Shown: piece by piece, positions 49,810 to 52,800 of the stretch
Position numbering within the stretch: the stretch's first letter is position 1
Layout of the letters: the number at the start of each line of letters is the position of its first letter
NCBI GenBank assembly: GCA_002269645.1
Contig: NIVC01001581.1
Span: 62,001 to 126,000 of the forward strand
Source: Macrostomum lignano
Lineage: Eukaryota
Reading direction: 5' to 3'
DNA: 64,000 nt
Made by a program: the position numbers and the translations under genes
The notes under the pieces: generated by a model
What the model saw: the letters and a program-made list of their open reading frames with translations, nothing else
Databases searched by the model: none
What the model was told of the DNA's origin: nothing

Positions 49810-52800
49810 CGGTGCGGGTGGCACGAGACCAGCGTCCACGTCGCGCCCCTGGACACCCCGCCAATGTGGCAGGAGCTCCGTGCGTCCCTGCCATCGACGG
49901 GGTGACGAATTGGTCTCACCTCCGGGTATGCAGCCTGGGAGAGCTGTCCCCCAACGTTGGGTTGGCGGTGGATGGCGGTTTTTACAGCGTAAGTCGGTCT
50001 GCGGAGGAGCCCTGCGCACCGGGACTCGGGTCCCCACGCTCTCTGGCCACCCGCCGCAGGCCGCAAATTGGATTCCGCCGTCTACTGCCCGCCCGCGCAG
50101 GGTCAGCGCCCCGGCTGCATGGGGCTACGCCCCCGGTCCTATTAGCTACGTCTAGCTACAATGTCCGTGACCCGAAAAAGAAAGAAAGAAAGCAGGCGGT
50201 GCACAGCAGCGAGAAGCACTTGGTTCAAAGACAGCAATTCCAACAAAAAAATCAGAAGCAGAGGTCTGCTAGCTTTCGGTTGGCAATCTCTTCAAATATT
50301 GTTATAGATAAAATTCACTGTTTTCTAGTCTCCTTGGATTCTCCCCTTCATCCAGTTCGAATTCTCCACTTGGGATTTCCTAGCTCTAGAGTTCACCCAG
50401 TTTGGATTCTCCATTTGGTATTCCCCCAGCTCTGGAATTCCCCCAGTTTGGATTCTTGTAATGGCTATAGTAAGAAGGCCGGAGTTTGCTGAGACGAAAG
50501 GTGGAGCCCTGCTAGGTGGGCTGATCGATGCTTATTTATTTTCAGACTATGGAATAAAATCACGCCACCAGAGTGGGGGTGAAGAATCGCCGCACTTGAA
50601 GTGCATGAATTGTACGCAAGGCCGATGTACATATAAATTGGGCTCGCGTGAGCACTACATCTCTCCACGCGCGGATTATTAACAGGGGAATAAAAAACAA
50701 AATATTGTGACTAAAAAGTACATTGTCAAGGTCTGCTGCTGCAAAGCAATCACTGAGACTCAATGTCTCCTGAGGTCCGGCTCCTTGTAGTTCTTGGCCT
50801 CGTCTTTGGCCTGGCGCGGGTGCGGCCTGGCCGCGATCGGATCGGCGGGCTCGTCGGGCGCCTCTTGGCCGCCGGTCTCGCCGATGGACTCGGCCTGCTG
50901 CGTGGCCGGGGGCTCCGGCAGCTTCTTGACCTGAGTGGCGTGCCGTCGGCAAGTGGTCTCGCCACGCTGAATGACCAGGGCATCTCCATGAACCTCGGCC
51001 ACAGTCCACGGTACGGTTTCAAAGAAGGTGTCCGTTTTTTGTCGGTGCTGCTGGCGCCGTAGGACGCGGTCACCTGGTTGGATTTGATGGTCAGCGGCTC
51101 GTTCTCGCTGGTCGCGGTAGTCCTTCATCTTCTCCTTGGCCTTCGAATCCGCTCCGGCAATGGCGGCTCGCGTCGCTTTCACAGGTCGCGAGTGGTGAAG
51201 ACTGGGGATTGTGTCATTGACTTGGCGTCCGAAGAGCAGGTTTGCCGGGGCGACTCCTGTCGAGCTGTGCGGCGTGCGCCGGTACGCGGCCAGGTATTCG
51301 TCGACAGCTGCCGTCCAGTCTTTGCCTTCGGCGACAGCTGCGCGTATGGCTTTGTTGAGGCCCTTGTTGCAGCGCTCGGTGGCTCCGTTAGCCTGCGGGT
51401 AGAGCGGCGTGATCCGATGATGGTGGACTCCTTGGCCTTTCAGGAAGCAGCTGGTGAAATCCGATGATGAGAAAGGCGGCCCGTTGTCGGTTGACACCTT
51501 GAGCGGCTGGCCGAAGATGCTAAACCACCGTCTGAGCACGCGTATGGCGGCGGCGGCCGTTGTGTCTGCCATAACTTCAACCAGCGGAAATCGAGAAAAG
51601 TGATCGGTGCAGACGAGTAACGACTTTCCTTTGACGGGCCCCAGGAAGTCAAGGCCGAGATCGAGCCACGGCCCATCCGGCAGATCCGTCGGCTTCAAGG
51701 GCGTTGCCTTCGTAGTCGCCTCGCTGTTGCAGGCCGCGCAGCTGATGCAGGTGGCCACATGAGTCTCCACTGCCGAGCGCATGCCGGGCCACCAGACCTT
51801 TGACTGCAGGCGGTCCAGTGTCTTCCGCATGCCTTGGTGTCCTAGATGGGCCAGTTGAAGGCACCGGAACCGCAGCACTGCAGGCACGAACAGCTGGCTG
51901 CCGCGCAATAGGAGGCCGTCGTGTTCCGACAGCTCGTGCCTGACGCCTCGGATGTCCTTCAGATCCGCGTCCTTGGAGTCCCAGCTGCCGGTGCGAATGG
52001 CGCGGCGGGCAGCCTGCACTGTCGGGTCCTGCTCCGAAGCTGCCTTGATCGCTGATATGCTGAGAGACACCGGAGTCGCCGCCTGGACGACCATGGCAAC
52101 GAACGCTGCGTCGGCCCGCTCGCCTCCGTTGTTTGGCGGCAGCGGTAGCGGTTGCCGGCTGAGCACGTCGGACGGGTTTCCGGCTCCGGGCTGGTAAATG
52201 ACGCTGAAGGCAAGGTCCTGCAGTCGGAGAGCCATGCGTTCAATTCTGGGCGGCGGCCGAGACCCTGGGCTGAACATCGAGACGAGCGGTCTGTGGTCAG
52301 TTATGACTTTAAAGTGCTCACAGCCGCTGAGAAAATGATGAAATTTTAGACAGCCATACTTTACTGCGAGTGCCTCGCGCTCGGTCTGGGAGTACCGCTG
52401 CTCGGTGGCGCTGAGGCTGCGGCTCGCGTAGGCCACCGGTCGAATCGAACCATCAGGCTGCACTTGGGCTAGGATGGCGCCGGCTCCGGTTGGACTGGCA
52501 TCGACGATCAGCTGGGACTGCAGGTCTTTGCTGAAGAATGCCAGCGCCTGGCTACTGGCTATCGTGCGCTTGATGTCGATGAAAGCTGCTTCTTGATGGT
52601 CGCCCCACGCCCACTCTGCCCCGTGCTTTGTCAGATCTCGGAGCGGCCGTGCCCTGTCGGACAGGTTGCTAATGAAGCGAGCGACAAAGGTGACGAGGCC
52701 GAGGAAGGACCTGACCTCGGTAGCGTTGGTCGGTCTTTTGAAGCAGTTAATGGCCGCCACCTTCTCTGTGCTGGGATGGATTCCGGCTGCGGTGAGGCGC

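Follow-up and report, generated by a model that had tools for sequence, protein, structure and literature searches.

Ribozymes of the hepatitis delta virus (HDV) type occur in a number of retrotransposons that lack long terminal repeats (LTRs), where they cleave the element RNA at its 5' junction. This has been described for R4, Dong, baggins, L1Tc, and RTE elements, and the same logic is established for R2 (PMC3774820). According to a review, long interspersed elements (LINEs) as well as non-autonomous short interspersed elements (SINEs) use HDV-like ribozymes (PMC6765202). In the short internally deleted elements (SIDEs), a ribozyme is joined to the 3' end of a LINE (PMC3414825). Flatworm retroposons of comparable kinds are the Sm-alpha SINE of Schistosoma with its hammerhead ribozyme, LINEs with a twister variant (PMC8501958), and the R2 element of Schmidtea (PMC3774820). 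The subject of this work is a 375-bp element of the flatworm Macrostomum lignano, located at 49816-50190 (+ strand) in a 64,000-nt stretch of contig NIVC01001581.1 (the window; all coordinates are positions in it, and G1 is G49816, the first nucleotide of the element). At the exact 5' end of this short retroposon, the fold of an HDV-like ribozyme is present.

We propose that the element is probably a young, non-autonomous, SIDE-like non-LTR retroposon made up of a ribozyme head and a LINE-type 3' end, non-coding and free of an RNA polymerase III (pol III) promoter, whose RNA would be co-transcribed, cut at its 5' end by the ribozyme, and copied by a LINE enzyme.

Results

The insert is GC-rich, 375 bp long, and composed of the ribozyme, a structured body, and a tail. 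It is flanked by a perfect direct repeat, AGCAGGCGGTGC (12/12 bp, 100% identical), which forms the left and right copies of the target-site duplication (TSD; 49804-49815 and 50191-50202, both +). Because the left repeat ends at 49815, G49816 is the first base past the TSD, as the original prediction had stated. At the other end the element terminates in AAAAAGAAAGAAAGAA (50175-50190, +), an A-rich simple repeat, and both marks of a SIDE- or SINE-like retroposon, i.e., a TSD and an A-rich or simple-repeat 3' tail, are therefore present.

The ribozyme fold covers 102 nt (49816-49917, +), with cleavage predicted 5' of G49816. It is a nested double pseudoknot in the canonical order P1, P2, P3, P1.1, and P4, and 32 of the 32 proposed pairs are standard, which bears out the original prediction for every structural element and coordinate. 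From the 5' end (all features on the + strand), the fold begins with the P1 5' strand GGGUGGC (49816-49822), followed by J1/2 AC (49823-49824) and the P2 5' strand GAGACCA (49825-49831), which forms seven Watson-Crick pairs with the P2 3' strand UGGUCUC (49911-49917; -9.9 kcal/mol). P3 (GCG/CGC, 49832-49834/49842-49844) closes the loop L3, UCCACGU (49835-49841), from which C49836 and C49837 are engaged in P1.1 (CC/GG, 49836-49837/49851-49852). The P1 3' strand GCCCCU (49845-49850) stands between P3 and the 3' half of P1.1. P4 (49854-49904) is built from two 7-bp helices and an internal loop, the outer helix being CACCCCG/CGGGGTG (49854-49860/49898-49904) and the inner one TGGCAGG/CCTGCCA (49867-49873/49887-49893). 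J4/2, ACGAAU (49905-49910), places C49906 at the position of the catalytic C. The active-site features are intact, with C49906 in CGAAU and with the CC of L3 UCCACGU paired to GG 49851-49852.

The irregular part of the fold is P1. Its 3' strand has six nucleotides and U49819 of the 5' strand is therefore bulged, so that P1 consists of 3 bp, the bulged U, and another 3 bp (six pairs in total, G1-U35 included). In minimum free energy (MFE) folds of the ribozyme alone and of the whole element, P2 and P4 are retained. Compared with shuffles the MFE of the 102-nt ribozyme gives no signal (z = -0.47), a value that is not a test of the ribozyme because MFE folding cannot score pseudoknots. A UGA stop (49903-49905) is found at the border of P4 and J4/2, directly before the catalytic C, which may be coincidence; a stop codon in J4/2 is conserved in Drosophila R2 and absent from SIDEs (PMC3414825).

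The window was searched on both strands with a hand-written HDV descriptor requiring a P1 with at most one defect, three Watson-Crick pairs in P3, CC at positions 2-3 of L3, CC/GG in P1.1, at least five Watson-Crick pairs in P2, at least four pairs in P4, and CNRA in J4/2. The sole match was 49816. In 60 dinucleotide shuffles of the window one match was obtained, i.e., about 0.02 per shuffled window (128 kb, both strands), and shuffled sequence of the element's composition gave one match in 40 x 64 kb. A looser descriptor in which G-U pairs were allowed everywhere detected two further sites in the window, both weak, AT-rich, and attributable to chance; it is thus the stricter features that carry the signal. 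Since the sole match of the stricter descriptor starts on the exact first base past the TSD, a chance origin is very unlikely.

The HDV family of Rfam (RF00094) aligns globally at 49814-49918 (model positions 1-89 of 89) with a score of 26.8 bits and E = 0.087, the E-value being that of a targeted scan of 601 nt against 4227 Rfam families; scaled to RF00094 alone and to the full window, it becomes about 2e-3 by our own arithmetic. Agreement with the RF00094 consensus is seen in UCC.CG of L3, in CUGG, in CC/GG of P1.1, and in C-AAU of J4/2. The Rfam scan of the window at gathering thresholds returned zero matches. A search with HDV models, which the original prediction had named as a check, thus speaks for the ribozyme in its full-length alignment and falls short at the gathering threshold (26.8 vs 50 bits).

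Self-BLAST of the window found the element once (n=1). A second copy was detected at the protein level. When the concatenated stop-free and six-frame translation of the element was compared with a protein collection, the one match was UniRef100_A0A1I8HT69, a WD-repeat protein model from M. lignano. Residues 271-291 of this protein, GWHETSVHVAPLDTPPMWQEL, are identical to the translation of 49816-49878 (21 residues), and the same holds for residues 297-347 and frame +1 of 49949-50101 (51 residues), 72 codons in all. The shared sequence starts at G1, and what lies upstream of it differs (QQQQQQQPQR in the protein model vs (S)nRRC in the window), so the copy in A0A1I8HT69 was inserted independently and has the same 5' end. 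Dispersal is thus represented by one copy in the window and one in a different M. lignano gene, with the same 5' start. The original prediction of a ribozyme-headed, non-autonomous retroposon family is supported by the TSD, the tail, the lack of reverse transcriptase capacity, and the second copy at G1, with the word family standing here for two copies, one of them seen as protein only.

The second copy also bears on the shape of P1, whose 3' strand the original prediction had described as looking one A short in the window copy, which might attenuate that copy. A defect peculiar to the window copy is not supported. The copy in A0A1I8HT69 stays in the same frame over the first 63 nt, with identical residues and no frameshift, so the P1 3' strand has six nucleotides in both copies, and the bulge is a family trait rather than damage to the window copy. 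The two copies are nearly identical, which makes the family young and covariation uninformative even with both DNAs at hand. To judge from the two sequences, the version with the bulged P1 is the one that transposed recently.

The A0A1I8HT69 model apparently omits the equivalent of 49880-49932 as a 53-nt GT..AG mini-intron, by which the TGA at the P4/J4/2 border is removed, and its reading also needs one C fewer in the C-run at 49947-49951. Translation of ribozyme and body within this protein is likely an annotation artefact, or else real exonisation. An exhaustive profile search with frames +1 and +2 recovered A0A1I8HT69 plus two unrelated repetitive proteins and no further copy. A 21-mer of the catalytic core was found in six metagenome and six bacterial genome contigs; these hits were rejected as chance in GC-rich DNA with dissimilar flanks. 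The same 21-mer and a 26-mer of the body had zero matches in viral contigs, and the element sequence was not found in a search of literature full text.

A (CAG)16 microsatellite (49761-49808, +) lies just upstream of the insertion in the window. It is the sole (CAG) run of at least five units on the + strand within the 64 kb, the gap between it and G49816 is 7 nt, and the TSD starts within its final CAG units. Both copies of the element are located 7-9 nt downstream of a CAG or polyglutamine run (49761-49808 in the window; residues 260-270 in A0A1I8HT69). The pattern, seen in two copies, one of which came to light by way of a protein database, suggests that the element may prefer the edge of CAG repeats as its target. 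The flanks of the window copy consist of the CAG repeat and unique sequence, and with no ribosomal RNA (rRNA) match in the window, the copy does not occupy the R2/R1 site in 28S ribosomal DNA (rDNA). Identity with an R2 SIDE was rejected, the rDNA target being absent.

The region 3' of the ribozyme (49918-50190) is highly structured, with a folding energy of -137 kcal/mol vs -110.8 +/- 5.3 kcal/mol for shuffles (z = -4.9). It contains a long imperfect hairpin of about 70 bp (49928-50120, +; apex near 50026-50029), which, on the basis of the predicted fold, is a candidate for the structure that the partner reverse transcriptase recognises, and two small 3' hairpins (50121-50133 and 50134-50167, both +). 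The element cannot encode a reverse transcriptase because 375 bp is far too short. No protein match other than A0A1I8HT69 was found for any element frame in the databases searched, and the open reading frame (ORF) that spans the element has no Pfam family. As to pol III features, neither a tRNA, nor an A box or B box, nor an Rfam small-RNA family was detected for the element; a canonical pol III SINE derived from tRNA, 5S, or 7SL RNA was excluded, there being no internal promoter and no small-RNA-derived head.

The spanning ORF (48882-50492, +, 536 aa) contains the element together with a TSD (387 bp) in frame and stop-free. Read as an exonic copy, the window copy would contribute a stop-free in-frame peptide of 129 codons. 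By chance, an insertion would be in frame and open in roughly 1 of 9 cases, and the observation is therefore given little weight. The same ORF also reads through a 45-bp minisatellite; no Pfam domain was found in it, and, with the element removed, no homologue was found in a protein database search.

Other features of the window are listed here for completeness. A gypsy-type LTR retrotransposon (50347-55172, -) lies about 145 bp downstream of the element; it has an intact 1267-aa Pol (reverse transcriptase, RNase H, and integrase) and looks recently inserted, its LTRs being 98% identical over their 212-bp unique part and containing a 46-bp tandem repeat. A minisatellite array (49166-49546) is situated 270 bp upstream of the retroposon, and its 45-bp unit recurs at 21707-22536, about 27 kb away, which makes this a dispersed minisatellite family. 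Minisatellite arrays are also present at 313-1239, 4864-6088, 6841-7872, 19884-20630, 23306-24190, 37441-38345, 42993-43772, 61388-62050, and 62791-63100. The arrays give rise to long spurious ORFs in several frames on both strands, which fits a very repeat-rich genome. Among the host genes in the window are, at 43833-45841 (-), 10743-11363 (+), and 60676-62495 (-), exons resembling LETM1 (about 50% identity to the best relatives in the databases), an exon of a protein kinase, and a gene for an NHL-repeat protein; the ORF pieces of the window further matched PPP5-type phosphatase, TPR, and KA1 domains. Weak sub-threshold Rfam matches to C/D-box small nucleolar RNA and microRNA families (E about 1-9) at 30967-31088 (+), 59838-60011 (-), and 36676-36810 (-) are probably noise or repeats.

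Discussion

In the mechanism that we envisage, the element lacks its own promoter and would be transcribed within a longer host transcript. The HDV-like ribozyme would fold co-transcriptionally and cut 5' of G49816, so that the RNA released would have a defined 5' end. An autonomous LINE would supply the reverse transcriptase that binds the long hairpin, the small hairpins, and the (GAAA)n tail, and this LINE enzyme would then nick the target and copy the RNA by target-primed reverse transcription (TPRT), giving rise to the 12-bp TSD. Should the 5' end be produced by the ribozyme, cleavage occurs despite an irregular P1 with a bulged U in both copies, or is tuned by it.

Several findings weigh against this proposal. 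The RF00094 score lies below the 50-bit gathering threshold, and the HDV match was reported neither in the Rfam gathering scan nor in the whole-window scan by E-value. The partner LINE was not found in the window, where the 90 ORF pieces outside the gypsy element contain no non-LTR reverse transcriptase or endonuclease domain. The known copies number two, the second solely via the protein of a gene model. P1 with its bulge has a stability of -7.0 kcal/mol vs -11.8 kcal/mol for a repaired continuous helix, and mismatches in P1 are seldom seen in HDV-like ribozymes and have been tied to loss of cleavage in vitro in the R2 of the horseshoe crab and in two other cases (PMC3774820). Furthermore, GCCACCC in the body (50046-50052) is fully complementary to the P1 5' strand and a possible competitor of P1. 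The surrounding 15 nt (50040-50054) are 87% complementary to 49814-49828, with a pairing energy of -13.5 kcal/mol vs -7.0 kcal/mol for the bulged P1; as far as the modelled energies can tell, this helix may be a competing or regulatory one once the full RNA is made.

The weak P1 could also mean that the head is a relic, a LINE-derived ribozyme made inactive by its bulge, in which case the G1 end would go back to a master copy or would reflect the point of transcription initiation or full-length reverse transcription. Such a reading accords with a P1 that falls about 5 kcal/mol short of a continuous helix in stability and with the correlation between P1 mismatches and lost or weak activity in vitro (PMC3774820), and a promoter role of the head is conceivable, the 77 nt of L1Tc being both promoter and ribozyme (PMC3383444). 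However, two nearly identical, independent insertions both start at G1 and are both bulged, which points to recent transposition of the bulged version; the active-site nucleotides are all intact, and R2 ribozymes tolerate a P1 of 4 nt as well as mismatches in P1 (PMC3774820). We consider a relic distinctly unlikely. Mere resemblance, in which a GC-rich retroposon permits an HDV-like drawing where there is no ribozyme, finds some backing in the sub-threshold score (26.8 vs 50 bits), in the silence of the whole-window scans, in an MFE no better than that of shuffles (z = -0.47), and in the two other weak sites of the looser G-U descriptor. Against it, the stricter descriptor yields about 0.02 matches per 128 kb of shuffled sequence, its sole real match begins exactly where the TSD ends, the core agrees with the HDV consensus at L3, P1.1, and J4/2, and the z-score is no test, MFE folding being blind to pseudoknots; we put the probability of this reading very low.

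Least probable in our estimate is a third reading, in which the two copies are LINE-mediated retrocopies of a small ribozyme-processed RNA (delta-like, viroid-like, or retrozyme-like, with a rod-like body) and not members of a dedicated transposon family. A linear monomer released by HDV-type cleavage would indeed begin at G1, the body folds as a rod-like hairpin (z = -4.9), and of the Rfam families it is HDV that matches best. Yet the 375 nt contain no delta-antigen-like ORF and have no protein homologue in any frame, the descriptors found no minus-strand ribozyme, the window holds no tandem copies from which the 3' end could be processed, a (GAAA)n tail is what LINE-dependent elements typically have, and the core 21-mer and body 26-mer are absent from viral contigs.

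The proposal of a SIDE-like retroposon with a ribozyme head can be carried further. The element may be a CAG-repeat-seeking SIDE that lands in sense orientation at the 3' edge of polyglutamine tracts, its exonic copies adding an in-frame peptide and making the host mRNA self-cleave, and its ribozyme working with the conserved P1 bulge, a geometry undescribed for active HDV-like ribozymes. We regard this extended version as rather unlikely. If the preference for CAG tracts is real, the element could recurrently disrupt or modify polyglutamine-coding genes in a regeneration model organism. If the SIDE-like proposal itself is true, macrostomid flatworms and a non-rDNA SIDE-like element join the retroposons that cut their own 5' ends with HDV-type ribozymes, and the element provides a natural P1-bulge variant for probing the tolerance of the HDV fold. 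It is also an annotation hazard, for the ribozyme sequence is translated in a deposited M. lignano protein model. A literature search found no paper tying Macrostomum to any ribozyme.

Comparison with known systems

Among the closest described elements are the R2 SIDEs and R2/R1 hybrid SIDEs of Drosophila (Eickbush & Eickbush 2012, PMC3414825), which are likewise short and non-coding, with an HDV-like ribozyme at the exact 5' end and a structured LINE 3' end. They rely on co-transcription and on the TPRT machinery of a LINE supplied in trans, and the hybrid SIDEs make a TSD of 14 bp, similar in size to the 12 bp observed here (PMC3414825). They differ in host and location, being found in Drosophila 28S rDNA at the R2/R1 sites, whereas the window element lies in single-copy DNA beside a CAG run of a flatworm and has a bulged U in P1. 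The LINEs of the Dong/R4 lineage (Dong of Bombyx mori, PMC3774820) also have an HDV-like ribozyme that cleaves the 5' junction. Dong inserts at a trinucleotide microsatellite, (TAA)n (PMC3774820), which may be compared with the position of the present element 7-9 nt past (CAG)n in two copies (n=2). In contrast to the element described here, Dong is autonomous and codes for protein, and its 5' end joins the repeat directly; in the window, 7 nt of unique DNA stand between the repeat and the element, and there is a 12-bp TSD. In trypanosomatids, NARTc and RIME stand beside L1Tc and ingi as non-autonomous derivatives in which the HDV-like ribozyme head of the LINE has been kept and which are released from co-transcripts (PMC3185411, PMC4035085, PMC3383444). 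Their head is the 77-nt Pr77, which is also a promoter; the hosts are protists, and there is no sequence relation to the window element.

With the HDV family RF00094 the head shares the nested order of the double pseudoknot, and L3 UCC.CG, P1.1 CC/GG, and C-AAU align over the full model. It is set apart from that family by its score (26.8 vs 50 bits), by the interrupted P1, by a much longer P4 (a 35-nt insert in the alignment), and by its setting, which is retroposon-borne and cellular, not viral. The flatworm retroposons with ribozymes are comparable as non-LTR elements of Platyhelminthes whose RNA ends are set by a self-cleaving ribozyme; they have ribozymes of other classes (hammerhead or twister) or are rDNA-specific R2. 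The proposed working logic of the M. lignano element is that of a SIDE, NARTc, or RIME, a kind that is already well described, and its points of note are the unusual P1 and the possible preference for CAG repeats.

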